Source of the DNA: Auanema rhodensis
Taxonomy: Eukaryota; Animalia; Nematoda
DNA length: 64,000 bases
Direction of reading: 5' to 3'
Assembly (NCBI GenBank): GCA_964057225.1
Contig: OZ059900.1
Coordinates: forward strand, 15,128,001-15,192,000
Below are positions 12,711-55,871 of the stretch, piece after piece. The notes beneath the pieces were generated by a model. It did not search any database and had not been told where the DNA came from. It was given only the letters and a program-made list of their open reading frames with translations. How positions within the stretch are numbered: position 1 is the stretch's first letter; every line of letters begins with the position of its first letter. The position numbers and the translations under genes are program-made.

Positions 12711-12782
12711 CTCCCCGGCCGGGAATTGAACCCGGGTCTCGCATGTGACAGACGCGGATACTCACCACTATACTACCGAGGA
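12711..12782 (-). tRNA. tRNA-Asp(GTC)
   Basis: TCCTCGGTAGTATAGTGGTGAGTATCCGCGTCTGTCACATGCGAGACCCGGGTTCAATTCCCGGCCGGGGAG, 72 nt. Acceptor stem TCCTCGG/CCGGGGA, anticodon arm CGCGT-CT GTC AC-ATGCG, T arm CCGGG-TTCAATT-CCCGG, discriminator G, A and B boxes present, no encoded CCA. Confidence 0.95.
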
Positions 12783-13139
12783 TTGAATTTGCACTTAGAA
12801 ACTTTCATTAAGAGTGTGAGTTTGAATTATAGTAGAAAAATGAAACACTGTCTCTAACATATCTTGATTTATGGCCTACTTTACTCAAAGAGCTAATTGA
12901 AGTTTGGTGTTAAAATGAACAATTGATTAACGCTGACGTTTCAATTTTTTTCATCGTAATTGAGATAGAACATTTAAATTAAATGGAAGTGTTTAAAAAT
13001 TTAGAAAAAATCACAAGCTCAAATCACTTTTGAAAAAACAGAAAGTTTAAAACAACCTTTTTTCTAATAATTATCTTTTTAATTCGACTTTTGGAAGAAA
13101 ACAAAAATAGCATAACATTCAATAACGATGAATCAGAAC

Positions 13140-13144
13140 AAAAA
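13140..13144 (-). terminator. Pol III oligo-T terminator (representative; present in each full unit)
   Basis: Minus strand reads ...GGGGAG-AATG-TTTTT. Confidence 0.8.
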
Positions 13145-13148
13145 CATT

Positions 13149-13220
13149 CTCCCCGGCCGGGAATTGAACCCGGGTCTCGCATGTGACAGACGCGGATACT
13201 CACCACTATACTACCGAGGA
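13149..13220 (-). tRNA. tRNA-Asp(GTC)
   Basis: Identical to the consensus copy; T5 run 4 nt downstream. Confidence 0.96.
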
Positions 13221-13587
13221 TTGAATTTGCACTTAGAAACTTTCACTAAGAGTGTGAGTTTGAATTATAGTAGAAAAATGAAACACTGTCTCTAACATAT
13301 CTTGATTTATGGCCTACTTTACTCAAAGAGCTAATTGAAGTTTGGTGTTAGAATGAACAATTGATTAACGCTGACGTTTCAATTTTTTTCATCGTAATTG
13401 AGATAGAACATTTAAATTAAATGGAAATGTTTAACGACTTAGAAAAAAAACACAAGCTCAAATCACTTTTGAAAAAACAGAAAGTTTAAAACAACCTTTT
13501 TTCTAATAATTATCTTTTTTATCCGACTTTTGGAAGAAAACAAAAATAGCATAACATTCAATAACGATGAATCAGAACAAAAACATT

Positions 13588-13659
13588 CTCCCCGGCCGGG
13601 AATTGAACCCGGGTCTCGCATGTGACAGACGCGGATACTCACCACTATACTACCGAGGA
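13588..13659 (-). tRNA. tRNA-Asp(GTC)
   Basis: Identical copy. Confidence 0.96.
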
Positions 13660-14025
13660 TTGAATTTGCACTTAGAAACTTTCATTAAGAGTGTGAGTTT
13701 GAATTATAGTAGAAAAATGAAACACTGTCTCTAACATATCTTGATTTATGGCCTACTTTACTCAAAGAGCTAATGGAAGTTTGGTGTTAGAATGAACAAT
13801 TGATTAACGCTGACGTTTCAATTTTTTTCATCGTACTTGAGATAGAACATTTAAATTAAATGAAAATGTTTAAAAATTTAGAAAAAATCACAAGCTCAAA
13901 TCACTTTTGAAAAAACAGAAAGTTTAAAACAACTTTTTTTCTAATAATTATCTTTTTTATCCGACTTTTGTAAAAAAACAAAAATAGCATAACATTCAAT
14001 AACGATGAATCAGAACAAAAACATT

Positions 14026-14097
14026 CTCCCCGGCCGGGAATTGAACCCGGGTCTCGCATGTGACAGACGCGGATACTCACCACTATACTACCGAGGA
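14026..14097 (-). tRNA. tRNA-Asp(GTC)
   Basis: Identical copy. Confidence 0.96.
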
Positions 14098-14463
14098 TTG
14101 AATTTGCACTTAGAAACTTTCTTTAAGAGTGTGAGTTTGAATTATAGTAGAAAAATGAAACACTGTCTCTAACATATCTTGATTTATGGCCTACTTTACT
14201 CAAAGAGCTAATTGAAGTTTGGTGTTAAAATGAACAATTGATTAACGCTGACGTTTCAATTTTTTTCATCGTAATTGAGATAGAACATTTAAATTAAATG
14301 GAAATGTTTAAAAATTTAGAAAAAATCACAAGCTCAAATCACTTTTGAAAAAACAGAAAGTTGAAAACAACCTTTTTTCTAATAATTATCTTTTTAATTC
14401 GACTTTTGGAAGAAAACAAAAATAGCATAACATTCAATAACGATGAATCAGAACAAAAACATT

Positions 14464-14535
14464 CTCCCCGGCCGGGAATTGAACCCGGGTCTCGCATGTG
14501 ACAGACGCGGATACTCACCACTATACTACCGAGGA
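14464..14535 (-). tRNA. tRNA-Asp(GTC)
   Basis: Identical copy. Confidence 0.96.
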
Positions 14536-14901
14536 TTGAATTTGCACTTAGAAACTTTCATTAAGAGTGTGAGTTTGAATTATAGTAGAAAAATGAAACA
14601 CTGTCTCTAACATATCTTGATTTATGGCCTACTTTACTCAAAGAGCTAATGGAAGTTTGGTGTTAGAATGAACAATTGATTAACGCTGACGTTTCAATTT
14701 TTTTCATCGTACTTGAGATAGAACATTTAAATTAAATGGAAATGTTTAAAAATTTAGAAAAAATCACAAGCTCAAATCACTTTTGAAAAAACAGAAAGTT
14801 TAAAACAACTTTTTTTCTAATAATTATCTTTTTTATCCGACTTTTGTAAAAAAACAAAAATAGCATAACATTCAATAACGATGAATCAGAACAAAAACAT
14901 T

Positions 14902-14973
14902 CTCCCCGGCCGGGAATTGAACCCGGGTCTCGCATGTGACAGACGCGGATACTCACCACTATACTACCGAGGA
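14902..14973 (-). tRNA. tRNA-Asp(GTC)
   Basis: Identical copy. Confidence 0.96.
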
Positions 14974-15339
14974 TTGAATTTGCACTTAGAAACTTTCATT
15001 AAGAGTGTGAGTTTGAATTATAGTAGAAAAATGAAACACTGTGTCTAACATATCTTGATTTATGGCCTACTTTACTCAAAGAGCTAATTGAAGTTTGGTG
15101 TTAGAATGAACAATTGATTAACGCTGACGTTTCAATTTTTTTCATCGTAATTGAGATAGAACATTTAAATTAAATGGAAATGTTTAAAAATTTAGAAAAA
15201 ATCACAAGCTCAAATCACTTTTGAAAAAACAGAAAGTTTAAAACAACCTTTTTTCTAATACTTATCTTTTTTATCCGACTTTTGTAAAAAAACAAAAATA
15301 GCATAACATTCAATAACGATGAATCAGAACAAAAACATT

Positions 15340-15411
15340 CTCCCCGGCCGGGAATTGAACCCGGGTCTCGCATGTGACAGACGCGGATACTCACCACTAT
15401 ACTACCGAGGA
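15340..15411 (-). tRNA. tRNA-Asp(GTC)
   Basis: Identical copy. Confidence 0.96.
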
Positions 15412-15777
15412 TTGAATTTGCACTTAGAAACTTTCATTAAGAGTGTGAGTTTGAATTATAGTAGAAAAATGAAACACTGTCTCTAACATATCTTGATTTA
15501 TGGCCTACTTTACTCAAAGAGCTAATTGAAGTTTGGTGTTAAAATGAACAATTGATTAACGCTGACGTTTCAATTTTTTTCATCGTAATTGAGATAGAAC
15601 ATTTAAATTAAATGGAAGTGTTTAAAAATTTAGAAAAAATCACAAGCTCAAATCACTTTTGAAAAAACAGAAAGTTTAAAACAACCTTTTTTCTAATAAT
15701 TATCTTTTTAATTCGACTTTTGGAAGAAAACAAAAATAGCATAACATTCAATAACGATGAATCAGAACAAAAACATT

Positions 15778-15849
15778 CTCCCCGGCCGGGAATTGAACCC
15801 GGGTCTCGCATGTGACAGACGCGGATACTCACCACTATACTACCGAGGA
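15778..15849 (-). tRNA. tRNA-Asp(GTC)
   Basis: Identical copy. Confidence 0.96.
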
Positions 15850-16215
15850 TTGAATTTGCACTTAGAAACTTTCACTAAGAGTGTGAGTTTGAATTATAGT
15901 AGAAAAATGAAACACTGTCTCTAACATATCTTGATTTATGGCCTACTTTACTCAAAGAGCTAATTGAAGTTTGGTGTTAGAATGAACAATTGATTAACGC
16001 TGACGTTTCAATTTTTTTCATCGTAATTGAGATAGAACATTTAAATTAAATGGAAATGTTTAAAAATTTAGAAAAAATCACAAGCTCAAATCACTTTTGA
16101 AAAAACAGAAAGTTTAAAACAACCTTTTTTCTAATACTTATCTTTTTTATCCGACTTTTGTAAAAAAACAAAAATAGCATAACATTCAATAACGATGAAT
16201 CAGAACAAAAACATT

Positions 16216-16287
16216 CTCCCCGGCCGGGAATTGAACCCGGGTCTCGCATGTGACAGACGCGGATACTCACCACTATACTACCGAGGA
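16216..16287 (-). tRNA. tRNA-Asp(GTC)
   Basis: Identical copy. Confidence 0.96.
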
Positions 16288-16653
16288 TTGAATTTGCACT
16301 TAGAAACTTTCATTAAGAGTGTGAGTTTGAATTATAGTAGAAAAATGAAACACTGTCTCTAACATATCTTGATTTATGGCCTACTTTACTCAAAGAGCTA
16401 ATTGAAGTTTGGTGTTAAAATGAACAATTGATTAACGCTGACGTTTCAATTTTTTTCATCGTAATTGAGATAGAACATTTAAATTAAATGGAAGTGTTTA
16501 AAAATTTAGAAAAAATCACAAGCTCAAATCACTTTTGAAAAAACAGAAAGTTTAAAACAACCTTTTTTCTAATAATTATCTTTTTAATTCGACTTTTGGA
16601 AGAAAACAAAAATAGCATAACATTCAATAACGATGAATCAGAACAAAAACATT

Positions 16654-16725
16654 CTCCCCGGCCGGGAATTGAACCCGGGTCTCGCATGTGACAGACGCGG
16701 ATACTCACCACTATACTACCGAGGA
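16654..16725 (-). tRNA. tRNA-Asp(GTC)
   Basis: Identical copy. Confidence 0.96.
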
Positions 16726-17092
16726 TTGAATTTGCACTTAGAAACTTTCACTAAGAGTGTGAGTTTGAATTATAGTAGAAAAATGAAACACTGTCTCTAA
16801 CATATCTTGATTTATGGCCTACTTTACTCAAAGAGCTAATTGAAGTTTGGTGTTAGAATGAACAATTGATTAACGCTGACGTTTCAATTTTTTTCATCGT
16901 AATTGAGATAGAACATTTAAATTAAATGGAAATGTTTAACGACTTAGAAAAAAAACACAAGCTCAAATCACTTTTGAAAAAACAGAAAGTTTAAAACAAC
17001 CTTTTTTCTAATAATTATCTTTTTTATCCGACTTTTGGAAGAAAACAAAAATAGCATAACATTCAATAACGATGAATCAGAACAAAAACATT

Positions 17093-17164
17093 CTCCCCGG
17101 CCGGGAATTGAACCCGGGTCTCGCATGTGACAGACGCGGATACTCACCACTATACTACCGAGGA
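17093..17164 (-). tRNA. tRNA-Asp(GTC)
   Basis: Identical copy. Confidence 0.96.
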
Positions 17165-17530
17165 TTGAATTTGCACTTAGAAACTTTCATTAAGAGTGTG
17201 AGTTTGAATTATAGTAGAAAAATGAAACACTGTCTCTAACATATCTTGATTTATGGCCTACTTTACTCAAAGAGCTAATTGAAGTTTGGTGTTAGAATGA
17301 ACAATTGATTAACGCTGACGTTTCAATTTTTTTCATCGTAATTGAGATAGAACATTCAAATTAAATAGAAATGTTTAAAAATTTAGAAAAAATCACAAGC
17401 TCAAATCACTTTTGAAAAAACAGAAAGTTTAAAACAACCTTTTTTCTAATAATTATCTTTTTTATCCGACTTTTGTAAAAAAACAAAAATAGCATAACAT
17501 TCAATAACGATGAATCAGAACAAAAACATT

Positions 17531-17602
17531 CTCCCCGGCCGGGTATTGAACCCGGGTCTCGCATGTGACAGACGCGGATACTCACCACTATACTACCGAG
17601 GA
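17531..17602 (-). tRNA. tRNA-Asp(GTC), T-loop variant
   Basis: A>T at 17544 makes the T loop TTCAATA. Confidence 0.92.
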
Positions 17603-17968
17603 TTGAATTTGCACTTAGAAACTTTCATTAAGAGTGTGAGTTTGAATTATAGTAGAAAAATGAAACACTGTCTCTAACATATCTTGATTTATGGCCTACT
17701 TTACTCAAAGAGCTAATTGAAGTTTGGTGTTAGAATGAACAATTGATTAACGCTGACGTTTCAATTTTTTTCATCGTAATTGAGATAGAACATTCAAATT
17801 AAATAGAAATGTTTAAAAATTTAGAAAAAATCACAAGCTCAAATCACTTTTGAAAAAACAGAAAGTTTAAAACAACCTTTTTTCTAATAATTATCTTTTT
17901 TATCCGACTTTTGTAAAAAAACAAAAATAGCATAACATTCAATAACGATGAATCAGAACAAAAACATT

Positions 17969-18040
17969 CTCCCCGGCCGGGAATTGAACCCGGGTCTCGC
18001 ATGTGACAGACGCGGATACTCACCACTATACTACCGAGGA
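17969..18040 (-). tRNA. tRNA-Asp(GTC)
   Basis: Identical copy; only ~100 bp of native upstream flank retained. Confidence 0.95.
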
Positions 18041-18147
18041 TTGAATTTGCACTTAGAAACTTTCATTAAGAGTGTGAGTTTGAATTATAGTAGAAAAATG
18101 AAACACTGTCTCTAACATATCTTGATTTATGGCCTACTTTACTACTA

Positions 18148-21100
18148 AAATACTGTGTTTTTGTATTTTTCTAGTGTTCAGCATGTAAAATGCTTCATTT
18201 TAGTATGTAACACGCTGAAATTCGTTGCATTTGACGACTCATATGAACAAAAATCGATTTAATCAATATTAGCCATAAGGGGCGTGCCCTCAGAATATGC
18301 TAATTTCCTTAATTTTCTAACCCCTGTTTTTTGTCGTGAAAGTGGAACTAGACGTTGTACGAACAATTTTGAGCTAGGTTTCATTGACATTGCATGAGTT
18401 TGAACACATGAAATCGTAAGTCAAAACCTTGTTTACAGCGAAATTTCTAAAAACTGGTTTTCCAGCATAATAAAATATTTCTCATGGGAAATACTGTGTT
18501 TTTGTATTTTTCTAGTGTTCAGCATGTAAAATGCTTCATTTTAGTATGTAACACGCTGAAATTCGTTGCATTTGACGACTCATATGAACAAAAATCGATT
18601 TAATCAATATTAGCCATAAGGGGCGTGCCCTCAGAATATGCTAATTTCCTTAATTTTCTAACCCCTGTTTTTTTGTCGTGAAAGTGGGACTAGACGTTGT
18701 ACAAACAATTTTGAGCTAGGTTTCATTGACATTGCATGAGTTTGAACACATGAAATCGTAAGTCAAAACCTTGTTTACAGCGAAATTTCCAAAAACTGGT
18801 TTTCCAGCATAATAAAATATTTCTCATGGGAAATACTGTGTTTTTGTATTTTTCTAGTGTTCAGCATGTAAAATGCTTCATTTTAGTATGTAACACGCTG
18901 AAATTCGTTGCATTTGACGACTCATATGAACAAAAATCGATTTAATCAATATTAGCCATAAGGGGCGTGCCCTCAGAATATGCTAATTCCCTTAATTTTC
19001 TAACCCCTGTTTTTTTGTCGTGAAAGTGGAACTAGACGTTGTACGAACAATTTTGAGCTAGGTTTCATTGACATTGCATGAGTTTGAACACATGAAATCG
19101 TAAGTCAAAACCTTGTTTACAGCGAAATTTCCAAAAACTGGTTTTCCAGCATAATAAAATATTTCTCATGGGAAATACTGTGTTTTTGTATTTTTCTAGT
19201 GTTCAGCATGTAAAATGCTTCATTTTAGTATGTAACACGCTGAAATTCGTTGCATTTGACGACTCATATGAACAAAAATCGATTTAATCAATATTAGCCA
19301 TAAGGGGCGTGCCCTCAGAATATGCTAATTCCCTTAATTTTCTAACCCCTGTTTTTTCGTCGTGAAAGTGGAACTAGACGTTGTACAATCAATTTTGAGC
19401 TAGGTTTCATTGACATTGCATGAGTTTGAACACATGAAATCGTAAGTCAAAACCTTGTTTACAGCGAAATTTCCAAAAACTGGTTTTCCAACATATTAAA
19501 ATATTTCTCATGGGAAATACTGTGTTTTTGTATTTTTCTAGTGTTCAGCATGTAAAATGCTTCATTTTAGTATGTAACACGCTGAAATTCGTTGCATTTG
19601 ACGACTCATATGAACAAAAATCGATTTAATCAATATTAGCCATAAGGGGCGTGCCCTCAGAATATGCTAATTCCCTTAATTTTCTAACCCCTGTTTTTTT
19701 GTCGTGAAAGTGGGACTAGACGTTGTACGAACAATTTTGAGCTAGGTTTCATTGACATTGCATGAGTTTGAACACATGAAATCGTAAGTCAAAACCTTGT
19801 TTACAGCGAAATTTCCAAAAACTGGTTTTCCAGCATAATAAAATATTTCTCATGGGAAATACTGTGTTTTTGTATTTTTCTAGTGTTTAGCATGTAAAAT
19901 GCTTCATTTTAGTATGTAACACGCTGAAATTCGTTGCATTTGACGACTCATATGAACAAAAATCGATTTAATCAATATTAGCCATAAGGGGCGTGCCCTC
20001 AGAATATGCTAATTTCCTTAATTTTCTAACCCCTGTTTTTTTGTCGTGAAAGTGGAACTAGACGTTGTACGAACAATTTTGAGCTAGGTTTCATTGACAT
20101 TGCATGAGTTTGAACACATGAAATCGTAAGTCAAAACCTTGTTTACAGCGAAATTTCCAAAAACTGGTTTTCCAACATATTAAAATATTTCTCATGGGAA
20201 ATACTGTGTTTTTGTATTTTTCTAGTGTTCAGCATGTAAAATGCTTCATTTTAGTATGTAACACGCTGAAATTCGTTGCATTTGACGACTCATATGAACA
20301 AAAATCGATTTAATCAATATTAGCCATAAGGGGCGTGCCCTCAGAATATGCTAATTCCCTTAATTTTCTAACCCCTGTTTTTTTGTCGTGAAAGTGGGAC
20401 TAGACGTTGTACGAACAATTTTGAGCTAGGTTTCATTGACATTGCATGAGTTTGAACACATGAAATCGTAAGTCAAAACCTTGTTTACAGCGAAATTTCC
20501 AAAAACTGGTTTTCCAGCATAATAAAATATTTCTCATGGGAAATACTGTGTTTTTGTATTTTTCTAGTGTTTAGCATGTAAAATGCTTCATTTTAGTATG
20601 TAACACGCTGAAATTCGTTGCATTTGACGACTCATATGAACAAAAATCGATTTAATCAATATTAGCCATAAGGGGCGTGCCCTCAGAATATGCTAATTTC
20701 CTTAATTTTCTAACCCCTGTTTTTTTGTCGTGAAAGTGGAACTAGACGTTGTACGAACAAGTTTGAGCTAGGTTTCATTGACATTGCATGAGTTTGAACA
20801 CATGAAATCGTAAGTCAAAACCTTGTTTACAGCGAAATTTCCAAAAACTGGTTTTCCAGCATAATAAAATATTTCTCATGGGAAATACTGTGTTTTTGTA
20901 TTTTTCTAGTGTTCAGCATGTAAAATGCTTCATTTTAGTATGTAACACGCTGAAATTCGTTGCATTTGACGACTCATATGAACAAAAATCGATTTAATCA
21001 ATATTAGCCATAAGGGGCGTGCCCTCAGAATATGCTAATTCCCTTAATTTTCTAACCCCTGTTTTTTTGTCGTGAAAGTGGAACTAGACGTTGTACGAAC

Positions 21101-24100
21101 AATTTTGAGCTAGGTTTCATTGACATTGCATGAGTTTGAACACATGAAATCGTAAGTCAAAACCTTGTTTACAGCGAAATTTCCAAAAACTGGTTTTCCA
21201 GCATAATAAAATATTTCTCATGGGAAATACTGTGTTTTTGTATTTTTCTAGTGTTCAGCATGTAAAATACTTCATTTTAGTATGTAACACGCTGAAATTC
21301 GTTGCATTTGACGACTCATATGAACAAAAATCGATTTAATCAATATTAGCCATAAGGGGCGTGCCCTCAGAATATGCTAATTTCCTTAATTTTCTAACCC
21401 CTGTTTTTTTGTCGTGAAAGTGGAACTAGACGTTGTACGAACAATTTTGAGCTAGGTTTCATTGACATTGCATGAGTTTGAACACATGAAATCGTAAGTC
21501 AAAACCTTGTTTACAGCGAAATTTCCAAAAACTGGTTTTCCAGCATAATAAAATATTTCTCATGGGAAATACTGTGTTTTTGTATTTTTCTAGTGTTCAG
21601 CATGTAAAATGCTTCATTTTAGTATGTAACACGCTGAAATTCGTTGCATTTGACGACTCATATGAACAAAAATCGATTTAATCAATATTAGCCATAAGGG
21701 GCGTGCCCTCAGAATATGCTAATTCCCTTAATTTTCTAACCCCTGTTTTTTTGTCGTGAAAGTGGAACTAGACGTTGTACGAACAATTTTGAGCTAGGTT
21801 TCATTGACATTGCATGAGTTTGAACACATGAAATCGTAAGTCAAAACCTTGTTTACAGCGAAATTTCCAAAAACTGGTTTTCCAGCATAATAAAATATTT
21901 CTCATGGGAAATACTGTGTTTTTGTATTTTTCTAGTGTTCAGCATGTGAAATGCTTCATTTTAGTATGTAACACGCTGAAATTCGTTGCATTTGACGACT
22001 CATATGAACAAAAATCGATTTAATCAATATTAGCCATAAGGGGCGTGCCCTCAGAATATGCTAATTCCCTTAATTTTCTAACCCCTGTTTTTTTGTCGTG
22101 AAAGTGGAACTAGACGTTGTACGAACAATTTTGAGCTAGGTTTCATTGACATTGCATGAGTTTGAACACATGAAATCGTAAGTCAAAACCTTGTTTACAG
22201 CGAAATTTCCAAAAACTGGTTTTCCAGCATAATAAAATATTTCTCATGGGAAATACTGTGTTTTTGTATTTTTCTAGTGTTCAGCATGTAAAATGCTTCA
22301 TTTTAGTATGTAACACGCTGAAATTCGTTGCATTTGACGACTCATATGAACAAAAATCGATTTAATCAATATTAGCCATAAGGGGCGTGCCCTCAGAATA
22401 TGCTAATTTCCTTAATTTTCTAACCCCTGTTTTTTTGTCGTGAAAGTGGGACTAGACGTTGTACGAACAATTTTGAGCTAGGTTTCATTGACATTGCATG
22501 AGTTTGAACACATGAAATCGTAAGTCAAAACCTTGTTTACAGCGAAATTTCCAAAAACTGGTTTTCCAGCATAATAAAATATTTCTCATGGGAAATACTG
22601 TGTTTTTGTATTTTTCTAGTGTTCAGCATGTAAAATGCTTCATTTTAGTATGTAACACGCTGAAATTCGTTGCATTTGACGACTCATATGAACAAAAATC
22701 GATTTAATCAATATTAGCCATAAGGGGCGTGCCCTCAGAATATGCTAATTTCCTTAATTTTCTAACCCCTGTTTTTTTGTCGTGAAAGTGGAACTAGACG
22801 TTGTACGAACAATTTTGAGCTAGGTTTCATTGACATTGCATGAGTTTGAACACATGAAATCGTAAGTCAAAACCTTGTTTACAGCGAAATTTCCAAAAAC
22901 TGGTTTTCCAGCATAATAAAATATTTCTCATGGGAAATACTGTGTTTTTGTATTTTTCTAGTGTTCAGCATGTAAAATGCTTCATTTTAGTATGTAACAC
23001 GCTGAAATTCGTTGCATTTGACGACTCATATGAACAAAAATCGATTTAATCAATATTAGCCATAAGGGGCGTGCCCTCAGAATATGCTAATTTCCTTAAT
23101 TTTCTAACCCCTGTTTTTTGGCCGTGAAAGTGGGACTAGACGTTGTAAAAACAATTTTGAGCTAGGTTTTATTGACATTGCATGAGTTTGAACACATGAA
23201 ATCGTAAGTCAAAACCTTGTTTACAGCGAAATTTCCAAAAACTGGTTTTCCAGCATAATAAAATATTTCTCATGGGAAATACTGTGTTTTTGTATTTTTC
23301 TAGTGTTCAGCATGTAAAATGCTTCATTTTAGTATGTAACACGCTGAAATTCGTTGCATTTGACGACTCATATGAACAAAAATCGATTTAATCAATATTA
23401 GCCATAAGGGGCGTGCCCTCAGAATATGCTAATTTCCTTAATTTTCTAACCCCTGTTTTTTTGTCGTGAAAGTGGGACTAGACGTTGTACGAACAATTTT
23501 GAGCTAGGTTTCATTGACATTGCATGAGTTTGAACACATGAAATCGTAAGTCAAAACCTTGTTTACAGCGAAATTTCCAAAAACTGGTTTTCCAGCATAA
23601 TAAAATATTTCTCATGGGAAATACTGTGTTTTTGTATTTTTCTAGTGTTCAGCATGTAAAATGCTTCATTTTAGTATGTAACACGCTGAAATTCGTTGCA
23701 TTTGACGACTCATATGAACAAAAATCGATTTAATCAATATTAGCCATAAGGGGCGTGCCCTCAGAATATGCTAATTTCCTTAATTTTCTAACCCCTGTTT
23801 TTTTGTCGTGAAAGTGGGACTAGACGTTGTACGAACAATTTTGAGCTAGGTTTCATTGACATTGCATGAGTTTGAACACATGAAATCGTAAGTCAAAACC
23901 TTGTTTACAGCGAAATTTCCAAAAACTGGTTTTCCAGCATAATAAAATATTTCTCATGGGAAATACTGTGTTTTTGTATTTTTCTAGTGTTCAGCATGTA
24001 AAATGCTTCATTTTAGTATGTAACACGCTGAAATTCGTTGCATTTGACGACTCATATGAACAAAAATCGATTTAATCAATATTAGCCATAAGGGGCGTGC

Positions 24101-45100: not shown

Positions 45101-48100
45101 AACCTTGTTTACAGCGAAATTTCCAAAAACTGGTTTTCCAGCATAATAAAATATTTCTCATGAGAAATACTGTGTTTTTGTATTTTTCTAGTGTTCAGCA
45201 TGTAAAATGCTTCACTTAAGTATGTAACACGCTGAAATTCGTTGCATTTGACGACTGATATGAACAAAAATCGATTTAATCAATTTTAGACATAAGGGGC
45301 GTGCCCTCAGAATATGCTAATTTCCTTAATTTTCTAACCCCTGTTTTTTTGTCGTGAAAGTGGAACTAGACGTTGTACGAACAATTTTGAGCTAGGTTTC
45401 ATTGACATTGCATGAGTTTGAACACATGAAATCGTAAGTCAAAACCTTGTTTACAGCGAAATTTCCAAAAACTGGTTTTCCAGCATAATAAAATATTTCT
45501 CATGAGAAATACTGTGTTTTTGTAACTTTCTAGTGTTCAGCATGTAAAATGCTTCATTTAAGTATGTAACACGCTGAAATTCGTTGCATTTGACGACTCA
45601 TATGAACAAAAATCGATTTAATCAATATTAGCCATAAGGGGCGTGCCCTCAGAATATGCTAATTTCCTTAATTTTCTAACCCCTGTTTTTTTGTCGTGAA
45701 AGTGGAACTAGACGTTGTACGAACAATTTTGAGCTAGGTTTCATTGACATTGCATGAGTCTGAACACATGAAATCGTAAGTCAAAACCTTGTTTACAGCG
45801 AAATTTCCAAAAACTGGTTTTCCAACATAATAAAATATTTCTCATGGGAAATACTGTGTTTTTGTTTTTTTCTAGTGTTCAGCATGTAAAATGCTTCATT
45901 TTAGTATGTAACACGCTGAAATTCGTTGCATTTGACGACTCATATGAACAAAAATCGATTTAATCAATATTAGCCATAAGGGGCGTGCCCTCAGAATATG
46001 CTAATTTCCTTAATTTTCTAACCCCTGTTTTTTTGTCGTGAAAGTGGAACTAGACGTTGTACGAACCATTTTGAGCTAGGTTTCATTGACATTGCATGAG
46101 TTTGAACACGTGAAATCGTAAGTCAAAACCTTGTTTACAGCGAAATTTCCAAAAACTGGTTTTCCAGCATAATAAAATATTTCTCATGGGAAATACTGTG
46201 TTTTTGTATTTTTTTAGTGTTCAGCATGTAAAATGCTTCATTTTAGTATGTAACACGCTGAAATTCGTTGCATTTGACGACTCATATGAACAAAAATCGA
46301 TTTAATCAATATTAGCCATAAGGGGCGTGCCCTCAGAATATGCTAATTTCCTTAATTTTCTAACCCCTGTTTTTTTGTCGTGAAAGTGGAACTAGACGTT
46401 GTACGAACAATTTTGAGCTAGGTTTCATTGACATTGCATGAGTTTGAACACATGAAATCGTAAGTCAAAACCTTGTTTACAGCGAAATTTCCAAAAACTG
46501 GTTTTCCAGCATAATAAAATATTTTTCATGGGAAATACTGTGTTTTTGTATTTTTCTAGTGTTCAGCATGTAAAATGCTTCATTTTAGTATGTAACACGC
46601 TGAAATTCGTTGCATTTGACGACTCATATGAACAAAAATCGATTTAATCAATATTAGCCATAAGGGGCGTGCCCTCAGAATATGCTAATTTCCTTAATTT
46701 TCTAACCCCTGTTTTTTTGTCGTGAAAGTGGAACTAGACGTTGTACGAACAATTTTGAGCTAGGTTTCATTGACATTGCATGAGTTTGAACACATGAAAT
46801 CGTAAGTCAAAACCTTGTTTACAGCGAAATTTCCAAAAACTGGTTTTCCAGCATAATAAAATATTTCTCATGAGAAATACTGTGTTTTTGTATTTTTCTA
46901 GTGTTCAGCATGTAAAATGCTTCATTTAAGTATGTAACACGCTGAAATTCGTTGCATTTGACGACTCATATGAACAAAAATCGATTTAATCAATATTAGC
47001 CATAAGGGGCGTGCCCTCAGAATATGCTAATTTCCTTAATTTTCTAACCCCTGTTTTTTTGTCGTGAAAGTGGAACTAGACGTTGTACGAACAATTTTGA
47101 GCTAGGTTTCATTGACATTGCATGAGTTTGAACACATGAAATCGTAAGTCAAAACCTTGTTTACAGCGAAATTTCCAAAAACTGGTTTTCCAGCATAATA
47201 AAATATTTTTCATGGGAAATACTGTGTTTTTGTATTTTTCTAGTGTTCAGCATGTAAAATGCTTCTTTTTAGTATGTAACACGCTGAAATTCGTTGCATT
47301 TGACGACTCATATGAACAAAAATCGATTTAATCAATATTAGCCATAAGGGGCGTGCCCTCAGAATATGCTAATTTCCTTAATTTTCTAACCCCTGTTTTT
47401 TTGTCGTGAAAGTGGAACTAGACGTTGTACGAACAATTTTGAGCTAGGTTTCATTGACATTGCATGAGTTTGAACACATGAAATCGTAAGTTAAAACCTT
47501 GTTTACAGCGAAATTTCCAAAAACTGGTTTTCCAGCATAATAAAATATTTCTCATGAGAAATACTGTGTTTTTGTATTTTTCTAGTGTTCAGCATGTAAA
47601 ATGCTTCATTTTAGTATGTAACACGCTGAAATTCGTTGCATTTGACGACTCATATGAACAAAAATCGATTTAATCAATATTAGCCATAAGGGGCGTGCCC
47701 TCAGAATATGCTAATTTCCTTAATTTTCTAACCCCTGTTTTTTGTCGTGAAAGTGGAACTAGACGTTGTAGGAATAATTTTGAGCTAGGTTTCATTGACA
47801 TTGCATGAGTTTGAACACATGAAATCGTAAGTCAAAACCTTGTTTACAGCTAAATTTCCAAAAACTGGTTTTCCAGCATAATAAAATATTTCTCATGGGA
47901 AATACTGTGTTTTTGTATTTTTCTAGTGTTCAGCATGTGAAATGCTTCATTTTAGTATGTAACACGCTGAAATTCGTTGCATTTGACGACTCATATGAAC
48001 AAAAATCGATTTAATCAATATTAGCCATAAGGGGCGTGCCCTCAGAATATGCTAATTTCCTTAATTTTCTAACCCCTGTTTTTTGTCGTGAAAGTGGAAC

Positions 48101-48255
48101 TAGACGTTGTACGAACAATTTTGAGCTAGGTTTCATTGACATTGCATGAGTTTGAACACATGAAATCGTAAGTCAAAACCTTGTTTACAGCGAAATTTCC
48201 AAAAACTGGTTTTCCAGCATAATAAAATATTTCTCATGGGAAATACTGTGTTTTT
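18148..48255 (+). repeat. 342-bp satellite, block 3 (~88 monomers)
   Basis: Same monomer and orientation as block 1, uninterrupted for ~30 kb. Confidence 0.99.
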
Positions 48256-48623
48256 ATTAGCATATTCTGAGGGCACGCCCCTTATGACTAATATTGATTA
48301 AATCGATTTTTGTTCATATGAGTCGTCAAATGCAACGAATTTCAGCGTGTTACATACTAAAATGAAGCTTTTTACATGCTGAACACTAGAAAAATACAAA
48401 AACACAGTATTTCCCATGAGAAATATTTTATTATGCTGGAAAACCAGTTTTTGGAAATTTCGCTGTAAACAAGGTTTTGACTTACGATTTCATGTGTTCA
48501 AACTCATGCAATGTCAATGAAACCTAGCTCAAAATTGTTCGTACAACGTCTAGTTCCACTTTCACGACAAAAAAACAGGGGTTAGAAAATTAAGGAAATT
48601 AGCATATTCTGAGGGCACGCCCC
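43915..48623 (+). repeat. Segmental duplicate of 1-4709 (offset 43,914 bp)
   Basis: Same ordered series of rare monomer variants and the same inversion junction. Confidence 0.95.
48256..48623 (-). repeat. 342-bp satellite, short inverted remnant (~1.1 monomer)
   Basis: Matches 4342-4709, including the private variants TTATGACTAAT and GAAGCTTTTT. Confidence 0.97.
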
Positions 48624-48917
48624 CAACATATCTTGATTTATGGCCTACTTTACTCAAAGAGCTAATTGAAGTTTGGTGTTAAAATGAACAATTGATTAAC
48701 GCTGACGTTTCAATTTTTTTCATCGTACTTGAGATAGAACATTTAAATTAAATGGAAGTGTTTAAAAATTTAGAAAAAATCACAAGCTCAAATCACTTTT
48801 GAAAAAACAGAAAGTTTAAAACAACCTTTTTTCTAATAATTATCTTTTTAATTCGACTTTTGGAAGAAAACAAAAATAGCATAACATTCAATAACGATGA
48901 ATCAGAACAAAAACATT

Positions 48918-48989
48918 CTCCCCGGCCGGGAATTGAACCCGGGTCTCGCATGTGACAGACGCGGATACTCACCACTATACTACCGAGGA
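48918..48989 (-). tRNA. tRNA-Asp(GTC)
   Basis: Identical copy. Confidence 0.96.
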
Positions 48990-49355
48990 TTGAATTTGCA
49001 CTTAGAAACTTTCACTAAGAGTGTGAGTTTGAATTATAGTAGAAAAATGAAACACTGTCTCTAACATATCTTGATTTATGGCCTACTTTACTCAAAGAGC
49101 TAATTGAAGTTTGGTGTTAAAATGAACAATTGATTAACGCTGACGTTTCAATTTTTTTCATCGTAATTGAGATAGAACATTTAAATTAAATGGAAATGTT
49201 TAAAAATTTAGAAAAAATCACAAGCTCAAATCACTTTTGAAAAAACAGAAAGTTTAAAACAACCTTTTTTCTAATAATTATCTTTTTAATTCGACTTTTG
49301 GAAGAAAACAAAAATAGCATAACATTCAATAACGATGAATCAGAACAAAAACATT

Positions 49356-49427
49356 CTCCCCGGCCGGGAATTGAACCCGGGTCTCGCATGTGACAGACGC
49401 GGATACTCACCACTATACTACCGAGGA
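49356..49427 (-). tRNA. tRNA-Asp(GTC)
   Basis: Identical copy. Confidence 0.96.
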
Positions 49428-49793
49428 TTGAATTTGCACTTAGAAACTTTCACTAAGAGTGTGAGTTTGAATTATAGTAGAAAAATGAAACACTGTCTCT
49501 AACATATCTTGATTTATGGCCTACTTTACTCAAAGAGCTAATTGAAGTTTGGTGTTAAAATGAACAATTGATTAACGCTGACGTTTCAATTTTTTTCATC
49601 GTAATTGAGATAGAACATTTAAATTAAATGGAAATGTTTAAAAATTTAGAAAAAATCACAAGCTCAAATCACTTTTGAAAAAACAGAAAGTTTAAAACAA
49701 CCTTTTTTCTAATAATTATCTTTTTAATTCGACTTTTGGAAGAAAACAAAAATAGCATAACATTCAATAACGATGAATCAGAACAAAAACATT

Positions 49794-49865
49794 CTCCCCG
49801 GCCGGGAATTGAACCCGGGTCTCGCATGTGACAGACGCGGATACTCACCACTATACTACCGAGGA
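49794..49865 (-). tRNA. tRNA-Asp(GTC)
   Basis: Identical copy. Confidence 0.96.
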
Positions 49866-50231
49866 TTGAATTTGCACTTAGAAACTTTCATTAAGAGTGT
49901 GAGTTTGAATTATAGTAGAAAAATGAAACACTGTCTCTAACATATCTTGATTTATGGCCTACTTTACTCAAAGAGCTAATTGAAGTTTGGTGTTAGAATG
50001 AACAATTGATTAACGCTGACGTTTCAATTTTTTTCATCGTAATTGAGATAGAACATTCAAATTAAATAGAAATGTTTAAAAATTTAGAAAAAATCACAAG
50101 CTCAAATCACTTTTGAAAAAACAGAAAGTTTAAAACAACCTTTTTTCTAATAATTATCTTTTTTATCCGACTTTTGTAAAAAAACAAAAATAGCATAACA
50201 TTCAATAACGATGAATCAGAACAAAAACATT

Positions 50232-50303
50232 CTCCACGGCCGGGAATTGAACCCGGGTCTCGCATGTGACAGACGCGGATACTCACCACTATACTACCGA
50301 GGA
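50232..50303 (-). tRNA. tRNA-Asp(GTC), acceptor-stem variant
   Basis: C>A at 50236 turns the U4-G wobble pair into a U-U mismatch. Confidence 0.9.
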
Positions 50304-50670
50304 TTGAATTTGCACTTAGAAACTTTCACTAAGAGTGTGAGTTTGAATTATAGTAGAAAAATGAAACACTGTCTCTAACATATCTTGATTTATGGCCTAC
50401 TTTACTCAAAGAGCTAATTGAAGTTTGGTGTTAGAATGAACAATTGATTAACGCTGACGTTTCAATTTTTTTCATCGTAATTGAGATAGAACATTTAAAT
50501 TAAATGGAAATGTTTAACGACTTAGAAAAAAAACACAAGCTCAAATCACTTTTGAAAAAACAGAAAGTTTAAAACAACCTTTTTTCTAATAATTATCTTT
50601 TTTATCCGACTTTTGGAAGTAAACAAAAATAGCATAACATTCAATAACGATGAATCAGAACAAAAACATT

Positions 50671-50742
50671 CTCCCCGGCCGGGAATTGAACCCGGGTCTC
50701 GCATGTGACAGACGCGGATACTCACCACTATACTACCGAGGA
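50671..50742 (-). tRNA. tRNA-Asp(GTC)
   Basis: Identical copy. Confidence 0.96.
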
Positions 50743-51108
50743 TTGAATTTGCACTTAGAAACTTTCATTAAGAGTGTGAGTTTGAATTATAGTAGAAAAA
50801 TGAAACACTGTCTCTAACATATCTTGATTTATGGCCTACTTTACTCAAAGAGCTAATGGAAGTTTGGTGTTAGAATGAACAATTGATTAACGCTGACGTT
50901 TCAATTTTTTTCATCGTACTTGAGATAGAACATTTAAATTAAATGGAAATGTTTAAAAATTTAGAAAAAATCACAAGCTCAAATCACTTTTGAAAAAACA
51001 GAAAGTTTAAAACAACTTTTTTTCTAATAATTATCTTTTTTATCCAACTTTTGTAAAAAAACAAAAATAGCATAACATTCAATAACGATGAATCAGAACA
51101 AAAACATT

Positions 51109-51180
51109 CTCCCCGGCCGGGAATTGAACCCGGGTCTCGCATGTGACAGACGCGGATACTCACCACTATACTACCGAGGA
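51109..51180 (-). tRNA. tRNA-Asp(GTC)
   Basis: Identical copy. Confidence 0.96.
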
Positions 51181-51547
51181 TTGAATTTGCACTTAGAAAC
51201 TTTCACTAAGAGTGTGAGTTTGAATTATAGTAGAAAAATGAAACACTGTCTCTAACATATCTTGATTTATGGCCTACTTTACTCAAAGAGCTAATTGAAG
51301 TTTGGTGTTAGAATGAACAATTGATTAACGCTGACGTTTCAATTTTTTTCATCGTAATTGAGATAGAACATTTAAATTAAATGGAAATGTTTAACGACTT
51401 AGAAAAAAAACACAAGCTCAAATCACTTTTGAAAAAACAGAAAGTTTAAAACAACCTTTTTTCTAATAATTATCTTTTTTATCCGACTTTTGGAAGAAAA
51501 CAAAAATAGCATAACATTCAATAACGATGAATCAGAACAAAAACATT

Positions 51548-51619
51548 CTCCCCGGCCGGGAATTGAACCCGGGTCTCGCATGTGACAGACGCGGATACTC
51601 ACCACTATACTACCGAGGA
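51548..51619 (-). tRNA. tRNA-Asp(GTC)
   Basis: Identical copy. Confidence 0.96.
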
Positions 51620-51985
51620 TTGAATTTGCACTTAGAAACTTTCATTAAGAGTGTGAGTTTGAATTATAGTAGAAAAATGAAACACTGTCTCTAACATATC
51701 TTGATTTATGGCCTACTTTACTCAAAGAGCTAATGGAAGTTTGGTGTTAGAATGAACAATTGATTAACGCTGACGTTTCAATTTTTTTCATCGTACTTGA
51801 GATAGAACATTTAAATTAAATGGAAATGTTTAAAAATTTAGAAAAAATCACAAGCTCAAATCACTTTTGAAAAAACAGAAAGTTTAAAACAACTTTTTTT
51901 CTAATAATTATCTTTTTTATCCAACTTTTGTAAAAAAACAAAAATAGCATAACATTCAATAACGATGAATCAGAACAAAAACATT

Positions 51986-52057
51986 CTCCCCGGCCGGGAA
52001 TTGAACCCGGGTCTCGCATGTGACAGACGCGGATACTCACCACTATACTACCGAGGA
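51986..52057 (-). tRNA. tRNA-Asp(GTC)
   Basis: Identical copy. Confidence 0.96.
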
Positions 52058-52424
52058 TTGAATTTGCACTTAGAAACTTTCACTAAGAGTGTGAGTTTGA
52101 ATTATAGTAGAAAAATGAAACACTGTCTCTAACATATCTTGATTTATGGCCTACTTTACTCAAAGAGCTAATTGAAGTTTGGTGTTAGAATGAACAATTG
52201 ATTAACGCTGACGTTTCAATTTTTTTCATCGTAATTGAGATAGAACATTTAAATTAAATGGAAATGTTTAACGACTTAGAAAAAAAACACAAGCTCAAAT
52301 CACTTTTGAAAAAACAGAAAGTTTAAAACAACCTTTTTTCTAATAATTATCTTTTTTATCCGACTTTTGGAAGAAAACAAAAATAGCATAACATTCAATA
52401 ACGATGAATCAGAACAAAAACATT

Positions 52425-52496
52425 CTCCCCGGCCGGGAATTGAACCCGGGTCTCGCATGTGACAGACGCGGATACTCACCACTATACTACCGAGGA
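52425..52496 (-). tRNA. tRNA-Asp(GTC)
   Basis: Identical copy. Confidence 0.96.
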
Positions 52497-52862
52497 TTGA
52501 ATTTGCACTTAGAAACTTTCATTAAGAGTGTGAGTTTGAATTATAGTAGAAAAATGAAACACTGTCTCTAACATATCTTGATTTATGGCCTACTTTACTC
52601 AAAGAGCTAATGGAAGTTTGGTGTTGGAATGAACAATTGATTAACGCTGACGTTTCAATTTTTTTCATCGTACTTGAGATAGAACATTTAAATTAAATGG
52701 AAATGTTTAAAAATTTAGAAAAAATCACAAGCTCAAATCACTTTTGAAAAAACAGAAAGTTTAAAACAACTTTTTTTCTAATAATTATCTTTTTTATCCA
52801 ACTTTTGTAAAAAAACAAAAATAGCATAACATTCAATAACGATGAATCAGAACAAAAACATT

Positions 52863-52934
52863 CTCCCCGGCCGGGAATTGAACCCGGGTCTCGCATGTGA
52901 CAGACGCGGATACTCACCACTATACTACCGAGGA
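52863..52934 (-). tRNA. tRNA-Asp(GTC)
   Basis: Identical copy. Confidence 0.96.
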
Positions 52935-53300
52935 TTGAATTTGCACTTAGAAACTTTCATTAAGAGTGTGAGTTTGAATTATAGTAGAAAAATGAAACAC
53001 TGTCTCTAACATATCTTGATTTATGGCCTACTTTACTCAAAGAGCTAATTGAAGTTTGGTGTTAAAATGAACAATTGATTAACGCTGACGTTTCAATTTT
53101 TTTCATCGTAATTGAGATAGAACATTTAAATTAAATGGAAGTGTTTAAAAATTTAGAAAAAATCACAAGCTCAAATCACTTTTGAAAAAACAGAAAGTTT
53201 AAAACAACCTTTTTTCTAATAATTATCTTTTTAATTCGACTTTTGGAAGAAAACAAAAATAGCATAACATTCAATAACGATGAATCAGAACAAAAACATT

Positions 53301-53372
53301 CTCCCCGGCCGGGAATTGAACCCGGGTCTCGCATGTGACAGACGCGGATACTCACCACTATACTACCGAGGA
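53301..53372 (-). tRNA. tRNA-Asp(GTC)
   Basis: Identical copy. Confidence 0.96.
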
Positions 53373-53739
53373 TTGAATTTGCACTTAGAAACTTTCACTA
53401 AGAGTGTGAGTTTGAATTATAGTAGAAAAATGAAACACTGTCTCTAACATATCTTGATTTATGGCCTACTTTACTCAAAGAGCTAATTGAAGTTTGGTGT
53501 TAGAATGAACAATTGATTAACGCTGACGTTTCAATTTTTTTCATCGTAATTGAGATAGAACATTTAAATTAAATGGAAATGTTTAACGACTTAGAAAAAA
53601 AACACAAGCTCAAATCACTTTTGAAAAAACAGAAAGTTTAAAACAACCTTTTTTCTAATAATTATCTTTTTTATCCGACTTTTGGAAGAAAACAAAAATA
53701 GCATAACATTCAATAACGATGAATCAGAACAAAAACATT

Positions 53740-53811
53740 CTCCCCGGCCGGGAATTGAACCCGGGTCTCGCATGTGACAGACGCGGATACTCACCACTAT
53801 ACTACCGAGGA
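53740..53811 (-). tRNA. tRNA-Asp(GTC)
   Basis: Identical copy. Confidence 0.96.
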
Positions 53812-54177
53812 TTGAATTTGCACTTAGAAACTTTCATTAAGAGTGTGAGTTTGAATTATAGTAGAAAAATGAAACACTGTCTCTAACATAGCTTGATTTA
53901 TGGCCTACTTTACTCAAAGAGCTAATGGAAGTTTGGTGTTAGAATGAACAATTGATTAACGCTGACGTTTCAATTTTTTTCATCGTACTTGAGATAGAAC
54001 ATTTAAATTAAATGGAAATGTTTAAAAATTTAGAAAAAATCACAAGCTCAAATCACTTTTGAAAAAACAGAAAGTTTAAAACAACTTTTTTTCTAATAAT
54101 TATCTTTTTTATCCGACTTTTGTAAAAAAACAAAAATAGCATAACATTCAATAACGATGAATCAGAACAAAAACATT

Positions 54178-54249
54178 CTCCCCGGCCGGGAATTGAACCC
54201 GGGTCTCGCATGTGACAGACGCGGATACTCACCACTATACTACCGAGGA
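54178..54249 (-). tRNA. tRNA-Asp(GTC)
   Basis: Identical copy. Confidence 0.96.
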
Positions 54250-54615
54250 TTGAATTTGCACTTAGAAACTTTCTTTAAGAGTGTGAGTTTGAATTATAGT
54301 AGAAAAATGAAACACTGTCTCTAACATATCTTGATTTATGGCCTACTTTACTCAAAGAGCTAATTGAAGTTTGGTGTTAAAATGAACAATTGATTAACGC
54401 TGACGTTTCAATTTTTTTCATCGTACTTGAGATAGAACATTTAAATTAAATGGAAGTGTTTAAAAATTTAGAAAAAATCACAAGCTCAAATCACTTTTGA
54501 AAAAACAGAAAGTTTAAAACAACTTTTTTTCTAATAATTATCTTTTTTATCCAACTTTTGTAAAAAAACAAAAATAGCATAACACTCAATAACGATGAAT
54601 CAGAACAAAAACATT

Positions 54616-54687
54616 CTCCCCGGCCGGGAATTGAACCCGGGTCTCGCATGTGACAGACGCGGATACTCACCACTATACTACCGAGGA
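54616..54687 (-). tRNA. tRNA-Asp(GTC)
   Basis: Identical copy. Confidence 0.96.
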
Positions 54688-55053
54688 TTGAATTTGCACT
54701 TAGAAACTTTCATTAAGAGTGTGAGTTTGAATTATAGTAGAAAAATGAAACACTGTCTCTAACATATCTTGATTTATGGCCTACTTTACTCAAAGAGCTA
54801 ATTGAAGTTTGGTGTTAGAATGAACAATTGATTAACGCTGACGTTTCAATTTTTTTCATCGTAATTGAGATAGAACATTTAAATTAAATGGAAATGTTTA
54901 AAAATTTAGAAAAAATCACAAGCTCAAATCACTTTTGAAAAAACAGAAAGTTTAAAACAACCTTTTTTCTAATAATTATCTTTTTTATCCGACTTTTGTA
55001 AAAAAACAAAAATAGCATAACATTCAATAACGATGAATCAGAACAAAAACATT

Positions 55054-55125
55054 CTCCCCGGCCGGGAATTGAACCCGGGTCTCGCATGTGACAGACGCGG
55101 ATACTCACCACTATACTACCGAGGA
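55054..55125 (-). tRNA. tRNA-Asp(GTC)
   Basis: Identical copy. Confidence 0.96.
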
Positions 55126-55491
55126 TTGAATTTGCACTTAGAAACTTTCACTAAGAGTGTGAGTTTGAATTATAGTAGAAAAATGAAACACTGTCTCTAA
55201 CATATCTTGATTTATGGCCTACTTTACTCAAAGAGCTAATTGAAGTTTGGTGTTAGAATGAACAATTGATTAACGCTGACGTTTCAATTTTTTTCATCGT
55301 AATTGAGATAGAACATTTAAATTAAATGGAAATGTTTAACGACTTAGAAAAAAAACACAAGCTCAAATCACTTTTGAAAAAACAGAAAGTTTAAAACAAC
55401 CTTTTTTCTAATAATTATCTTTTTTATCCGACTTTTGGAAGAAAAAAAAATAGCATAACATTCAATAACGATGAATCAGAACAAAAACATT

Positions 55492-55563
55492 CTCCCCGGC
55501 CGGGAATTGAACCCGGGTCTCGCATGTGACAGACGCGGATACTCACCACTATACTACCGAGGA
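55492..55563 (-). tRNA. tRNA-Asp(GTC)
   Basis: Identical copy (not flagged by the ORF track because of a 1-nt spacer deletion near 55446). Confidence 0.96.
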
Positions 55564-55871
55564 TTGAATTTGCACTTAGAAACTTTCATTAAGAGTGTGA
55601 GTTTGAATTATAGTAGAAAAATGAAACACTGTCTCTAACATATCTTGATTTATGGCCTACTTTACTCAAAGAGCTAATGGAAGTTTGGTGTTAGAATGAA
55701 CAATTGATTAACGCTGACGTTTCAATTTTTTTCATCGTACTTGAGATAGAACATTTAAATTAAATGGAAATGTTTAAAAATTTAGAAAAAATCACAAGCT
55801 CAAATCACTTTTGAAAAAACAGAAAGTTTAAAACAACTTTTTTTCTAATAATTATCTTTTTTATCCGACTT

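Follow-up and report, generated by a model that had tools for sequence, protein, structure and literature searches.

Arrangement of tRNA-Asp genes and satellite in the window

The window analysed here comprises 64,000 nucleotides of the nematode Auanema rhodensis (A. rhodense; GenBank assembly GCA_964057225.1, contig OZ059900.1, in the following C8, positions 15,128,001 to 15,192,000 of the forward strand) and contains two islands of tRNA-Asp genes which are embedded in a 342-bp satellite. ARAGORN identified 29 tRNA-Asp(GTC) genes, every one on the minus strand and with the anticodon gtc at position 34; 13 of them are located at 12711–18040 and 16 at 48918–55563. Tandem Repeats Finder (TRF) reported 438-bp arrays of 12.4 and 16.5 copies, the remainder of the window being 342-bp arrays, with matches of 97–98% within the arrays. 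A k-mer map assigned the entire window either to the 438-bp repeat that carries the tRNA gene (tDNA repeat) or to the 342-bp satellite, with gaps of no more than 4 bp at the junctions. An earlier note on this DNA, written from the sequence alone, had described two tRNA-Asp islands fused straight to a 342-bp satellite and almost no unique DNA in 64 kb. All three methods confirmed the former claim, and the latter agrees with the maximum of 4 bp of non-repeat sequence per junction. In the following list of features, and throughout the text, T denotes tDNA array, S the satellite (XT-2, see below) in plus orientation, and s the inverted satellite.

1–4341, plus strand: 12.7 units of the 342-bp satellite XT-2 in orientation S, which form the end of block S2 (31.1 kb)
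4341–4342, no strand: inversion junction between S and s; the S side stops at monomer position 13, the s side begins at position 155
4342–12710, minus strand: inverted XT-2, 24.5 units; a separate unit lineage
12711–18143, minus strand: tDNA island 1, 13 tRNA-Asp(GTC) genes in 438-bp units
17531–17602, minus strand: variant gene T59A (T-loop), 51.9 bits
18144–18147, no strand: junction between T and S, filler of 3–4 nt
18148–48255, plus strand: XT-2 block S3, 88 units
48256–48623, minus strand: inverted XT-2 piece of 368 bp, preceded by the inversion junction (second copy) and followed by island 2
48625–55871, minus strand: tDNA island 2, 16 genes
50232–50303, minus strand: variant gene G68T, private to island 2
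55872–64000, minus strand: inverted XT-2, right end open; partial unit at 61701–61708

With the exception of T59A and G68T, the genes of the window are identical (27 of 29). The canonical gene scores 55.4 bits against the Rfam model RF00005 (gathering score 29), the T59A gene 51.9 bits; the G68T mutation changes the U4–G pair of the acceptor stem to U–U. By direct reading, an A box (TAGTATAGTGG) occupies gene positions 8–18 and a B box (GGTTCAATTCC) positions 50–60. The gene ends in ...GGGGAG without encoded CCA and is followed by AATGTTTTTG, a run of five T residues (T5) being located 5 nt downstream. The same 72-nt gene (100% match) occurs at five dispersed sites on C3 (6.36, 6.67, 8.36, 8.89, and 9.11 Mb), which presumably represent the working copies, and also in an array with a period of 727 bp at C3:16027172–16072524.

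The satellite was identified by means of the XT-2 (X-elim) probe used for fluorescence in situ hybridization (FISH) in a preprint on A. rhodense (bioRxiv 10.64898/2026.08.27.747507). This probe has 149 matches in the window with at most one mismatch, one per 342-bp unit, and the satellite therefore is a repeat whose loss from somatic nuclei has been demonstrated. The probes XT-1 and XR-1 gave no matches in the window. The XR-1 probe is present on C8 from 7.21 Mb onward with a 348-bp period, which identifies C8 as the X chromosome. On C8, a contig of 26.9 Mb, the 342-bp satellite begins at about 15.0 Mb and reaches 26 Mb or beyond, and both tDNA islands are enclosed by it in blocks of 30 kb or more. 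According to the preprint, the A. rhodense assembly spans 180.9 Mb, and X-terminal repeats vanish from somatic nuclei from the 12-cell stage, as judged from read depth, telomere-addition reads, and FISH (bioRxiv 10.64898/2026.08.27.747507). It also describes some of the germline-restricted tandem repeats as arrays of 5S rRNA genes, several tRNA loci, and U2 genes, with an RNA-gene density of <20% per 10 kb. The locus studied here belongs to the same genome, carries the same XT-2 satellite by probe match, and has an RNA-gene density of 72/438, i.e., 16%. The identity of the satellite and the enclosure of both islands by it support the option, raised in the earlier note, of a germline-restricted locus; the islands themselves would likewise be eliminated from the soma, as their sequence context suggests.

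The inverted XT-2 at 4342–12710 differs from the S blocks by about 1.3% and is no mirror copy of them. At 61701–61708, a phase jump (partial unit) interrupts the inverted XT-2, the probe spacing being 518 bp instead of 342 bp. An internal XT-2 subrepeat, suggested by a weak 176-bp row in the TRF output, was not found; the row is due to this phase jump. The window contains no open reading frames of 90 or more amino acids. An Rfam search of spacers and satellite detected no other RNA families at E ≤ 0.1, and comparison of the tDNA spacer with XT-2 revealed only 10-nt chance matches.

The parent array and its copies

The mapped region was extended to 264 kb, comprising the window and the 200 kb to its left; the right side is known only from exact pattern counts. 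Within the 264 kb, the T, S, and s blocks follow each other in this order from left to right:

1: long terminal repeat (LTR) retrotransposon, ends at C8:14935807
2: T, 80 kb, carries a 299-bp insertion
3: S, 28.1 kb
4: s, 170 bp
5: T, 56 kb, carries the same 299-bp insertion
6: S, 31.1 kb
7: s, 8.4 kb
8: T, 5.4 kb (island 1)
9: S, 30.1 kb
10: s, 368 bp
11: T, 7.2 kb (island 2)
12: s, continues to the window end

In this region, blastn detected 340 tRNA-Asp genes, all of them on the minus strand. An array-specific 25-mer, comprising the gene end and the trailer, has 1,230 exact matches genome-wide, the first of which, among the matches listed, is at C8:14.405 Mb. The size of the array, at least 1,230 genes, is a lower bound which follows from these exact matches. 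The parent tRNA-Asp array is thus located at about 14.4–15.18 Mb of C8, at the inner edge of the multi-megabase XT-2 block, and with an array of at least 1,230 copies next door the window represents the distal fringe of a very large array rather than a pair of isolated islands. From C8:14405044 onward, the 25-mer has 343 exact matches on the plus strand and 887 on the minus strand, indicating at least one large inversion within the array. The units fall into 61 spacer haplotypes, which form local higher-order runs such as HKO-HKO-HKT and CDCDC. One of the options offered in the earlier note, a tDNA becoming a satellite, is supported by an array of at least 1,230 copies with higher-order patterns, segmental duplication, and transposon insertions.

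The 264-kb region contains exact repeats of up to 11 kb at shifts of approximately 43–45, 77–86, and 130 kb. Island 1 matches the end of the preceding 56-kb T block (C8:15095768–15101202) at 5435 of 5435 bases, and the identity extends 844 bp into the adjoining S satellite. Both of its junctions are those of the 56-kb block, left corresponding to left and right to right; the left one coincides precisely with the 3' end of a tRNA gene, XT-2 providing a T5 run 9 nt downstream. The T59A variant is present at three homologous positions, in island 1 and at two positions of the source blocks, and therefore goes back to one mutation which was copied by duplication. In island 2, the right 5.6 kb are one base off both C8:15084.6–15089.7 kb and C8:14999.3–15004.9 kb, while the left three units are of other origin. 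Each of its junctions is unique in the genome. The junction between T and S, with its 3–4 nt of filler, occurs three times in the genome and the junction between s and T twice, all of these inside the 264-kb region. Runs of up to 7.4 kb in block S3 recur without any difference in S2 and S1, located 43–130 kb upstream.

These relations suggest that the islands would be fragments of one large tandem array of tRNA-Asp genes (438-bp units, at least 1,230 copies) at the inner edge of XT-2, where very recent segmental duplications, with macro-units of about 45–85 kb, would have interleaved the edges of tDNA and satellite. Unequal exchange between tDNA units and inversions may have shuffled the blocks further. 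Island 1 would then correspond to the 56-kb T block with the same two junctions; only the last 12.4 units of that block would remain. Most simply, a macro-unit would have been duplicated and its tDNA block then reduced through unequal exchange between tDNA units. Island 2 would be a 7.2-kb mosaic copy placed in inverted XT-2.

The same relations bear on the option of boundary elements, also put forward in the earlier note. In this view the islands, as chromatin boundaries or condensin-loading sites, would partition the satellite by binding TFIIIC, similar to the tRNA genes at fission-yeast centromere 1 (PMC2040200). Each island does contain many intact B boxes, tDNA barriers are established in yeasts, and a boundary function has been suggested for a tRNA tandem repeat in human (PMC4041453). 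However, the same XT-2 satellite flanks each island on both sides, and the islands are recent partial copies of an adjacent block of 56–80 kb without special placement. Moreover, T blocks vary 15-fold in size (5 to 80 kb), and every type of tDNA–satellite junction known here is found solely at the array edge, within about 170 kb of a field of 11 Mb. The boundary option, left without sequence support, appears highly improbable.

Exact copies in a satellite that is hard to assemble also raise the question of an assembly artefact, i.e., of interleaving and duplicates that are due to false joins or false duplications. We consider this very unlikely. Island 1 and its source are 100% identical, and kb-scale exact repeats are numerous, but the longest exact repeat (11 kb) is below the length of typical HiFi reads, and the copies differ in block length, in their junctions, and in private variants such as G68T. 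A missed-adapter read at the inversion junction was considered and rejected, as the junction joins monomer positions 13 and 155 and does not form a perfect palindrome. HiFi coverage of germline-restricted regions is given as approximately 29-fold in the preprint, according to which most of the reads nevertheless have a unique mapping position in these repeats (bioRxiv 10.64898/2026.08.27.747507).

The exact 27-nt sequence of the inversion junction has four copies in the genome, two in the window (4341/4342 and 48255/48256) and two at C8:19737297–19737323 (plus strand) and C8:21072278–21072304 (minus strand). The junction thus recurs 4.6 and 5.9 Mb away, once in opposite orientation, which implies duplication over a megabase range within the XT-2 field. 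Four of eight rearrangement breakpoints in XT-2 lie in one monomer segment of 19 bp (positions 340 to 16, around ATACTGTGTTTTTGTA), and three more are located at monomer positions 130–168, around a 37-bp imperfect palindrome; the positions taken were 4341/4342, 12710, 18148, and 48255/48256 of the window and C8:15044475. The clustering has p ~0.05 in a rough scan statistic which assumes independent events, and some of the events may not be independent. The XT-2 arms on the two sides of island 1 begin at almost the same monomer position (within 3 nt), as in a palindrome or fold-back origin of the island. This origin was rejected, since comparison of the inverted arm with the S blocks gave only background identity, 98.6–98.7% in every register.

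Two transposon insertions were found in the array. A Ty3/gypsy-type LTR retrotransposon at C8:14928001–14935807 is inserted downstream of a tRNA gene, at a distance of about 40 nt, and contains an uninterrupted minus-strand frame of at least 2,076 amino acids, which comprises protease, reverse transcriptase, RNase H, and integrase and runs off the analysed stretch; a weak match to a herpesvirus glycoprotein B domain is below the Pfam cut-off (23.8 vs 43 bits). The 299-bp insertion resembles a solo LTR and is present in two identical copies, at C8:15005550–15005848 and C8:15090342–15090640. Its ends are TG...CA and its target duplication comprises 5 bp (TGAAA); it is situated 63 bp upstream of a tRNA-Asp gene and 10,562 bp from two of the junctions between T and S, and shows no similarity to the nearby 7.8-kb retrotransposon. 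Its two copies are identical because of the macro-duplication; such a single insertion event is insufficient to show targeting of tRNA genes.

Variation in genes and spacers

Variation was assessed in 329 complete aligned units (C8:14935808–15183871), with variants in at least seven copies classed as common and those in one to six copies as rare. Nucleotide diversity (π) is 0.0024 in the gene and 0.0196 in the spacer, i.e., 8-fold lower in genes, while the proportions of variable sites are similar (14/72 gene vs 66/366 spacer sites, p=0.74). Common variants affect 36 of 366 spacer sites and none of the 72 gene sites (p=0.0018). Rare variants, in contrast, are found at 14/72 gene and 30/366 spacer sites (p=0.008); the odds ratio is 2.1, with p=0.07 once stratified by G/C vs A/T. 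The lower π of the genes is thus solely due to their lack of old, common variants. The 27 complete units of the window gave a similar picture: with 26/366 spacer and 2/72 gene sites variable, and π values of 0.0199 and 0.0021, respectively, the claim of identical genes beside variable spacers was borne out, but the density of variable sites does not differ significantly between gene and spacer (Fisher p=0.29), so that the contrast lies in the frequency of the variants and not in the number of variable sites. Among the 340 genes of the 264-kb region, 39 (12%) deviate from the canonical sequence according to blastn, eight of them by 1-nt deletions.

In our reading, the genes were under constraint, or were held uniform by some process, at the time when the spacer differences which define the unit types came about, whereas since the amplification gene mutations have accrued at least as fast as spacer mutations. 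The spectrum fits a constrained founder cluster and a present set of copies on which selection is undetectable. The description of the genes as homogenised in the earlier note holds insofar as they lack old variants, but is overstated in view of the new mutations and the 12% of mutated copies. Likewise, the lower diversity per site expected for the genes was found, though not through detectable selection on the present copies.

A rival explanation is a germline-only dosage locus, whose transcription by RNA polymerase III (Pol III) in germ cells, oocytes, or very early embryos would raise the supply of tRNA-Asp, elimination serving as a permanent somatic off-switch. Several properties of the genes would suit such a role: the sequence is identical to that of dispersed genome copies and predicts a full cloverleaf (55.4 bits), A box, B box, and the T5 run 5 nt downstream are present, the gene at the junction also retains a T5 run, and no gene carries a common variant. 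Against increased supply, amplification of a single isoacceptor here would unbalance decoding rather than raise it, and rare variants are not depleted in genes, of which 12% in the 264 kb are mutated. The preprint places 5S and U2 arrays in the eliminated DNA as well, as might be expected if such loci had a germline role, but its authors prefer an accumulation of repeat blocks under weak selection (bioRxiv 10.64898/2026.08.27.747507).

The distribution of the rare variants provides a further point in favour of transcription. They occur at 19% of the gene sites, at 13% of the sites in the 30 nt on either side, and at 2–9% of the sites farther out; combining genes and 30-nt flanks gives 22/132 vs 22/306 sites (Fisher p=0.005; Cochran-Mantel-Haenszel p=0.024; windows chosen post hoc). 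An approximately 2-fold enrichment of this kind is the pattern expected of transcription-associated mutagenesis, which has been described for tRNA genes (PMC6130373), and could be its result, but since the signal is marginal when base composition is allowed for, it is to be taken as a lead only. On balance, the dosage explanation, which is compatible with the same origin by amplification, seems possible but rather unlikely. A wider version of it, in which the arrays of tRNA-Asp, 5S, U2, and other tRNA genes would all be transcribed by Pol III exclusively in the germline and in the embryo prior to elimination, with elimination as somatic off-switch and the excess of young mutations as footprint of transcription, is regarded as unlikely.

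Origin of the islands and comparison with known systems

The explanation which we consider likely is that the islands represent a passively amplified and shuffled satellite derived from a tDNA, located beside XT-2 in DNA which is absent from the soma and only weakly selected. The array and the XT-2 DNA would be kept in the germline and removed from every somatic cell around the 12-cell stage, and DNA discarded from the soma is probably under very little selection. The genes would look intact because the founding units came from a cluster that was constrained at that time and because the copies are very young; individual copies would no longer be kept intact. The islands presumably lack a function. 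Three points weigh against this explanation. The intact gene, identical to the dispersed copies on C3 and equipped with A and B boxes and a T5 run, may still function in the germline. Ongoing selection or gene-directed conversion could likewise account for the complete lack of common variants in the genes. Finally, further islands may be present deeper in XT-2, to the right of the window.

Oocyte-type 5S arrays of Xenopus, to which a germline-only dosage locus would be comparable, consist of thousands of tandem Pol III genes which are used only in the germline and silent in the soma. Somatic shutdown is achieved there by chromatin, in A. rhodense by loss of DNA, and a function has been demonstrated for the Xenopus arrays, whereas the array described here is known from its sequence. 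As to boundary elements, CTCF-type logic is not known in nematodes of this group. The tRNA tandem repeat at human 1q23.3 is likewise variable in copy number, built around tRNA genes, and a proposed boundary element, but it has a 7.3-kb unit with several tRNA genes and a CTCF site, is present in 9–43 copies, and is retained in somatic cells (PMC4041453). At fission-yeast centromere 1, where a Pol III-dependent tDNA barrier has been described, tRNA genes also adjoin repeat heterochromatin; these barriers are single genes or small clusters between two chromatin domains, in contrast to the kb-scale arrays within one satellite, copied from a neighbouring array, at the present locus (PMC2040200). 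The tRNA gene arrays of Entamoeba resemble the A. rhodense array in their head-to-tail units bearing tRNA genes, their large share of the genome, and their satellite-like evolution (PMC2652664). They comprise nearly all tRNA genes and constitute the working set, whereas here one isoacceptor, additional to dispersed copies, is amplified in DNA that is discarded from the soma.

The occurrence of tRNA arrays in the eliminated DNA of A. rhodense has already been reported in outline in the August 2026 preprint. One sentence of its main text is devoted to arrays of RNA genes, and that sentence gives neither the isoacceptor nor the 438-bp unit and is silent on how the array is interleaved with XT-2 as well as on macro-duplications, junctions, and variant spectrum (bioRxiv 10.64898/2026.08.27.747507). 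The architecture of macro-duplications, the exact junctions, and the two-phase variant spectrum are new. If the explanation by passive amplification is correct, the locus would show a working gene turning into a satellite once it resides in DNA that is never used by the body. The variant spectrum separates an older, constrained phase from the present, unconstrained one, a point which the published outline does not address. Together with a spacer-specific target, the junction sequences make both the elimination of the array and its Pol III activity in the germline directly testable.

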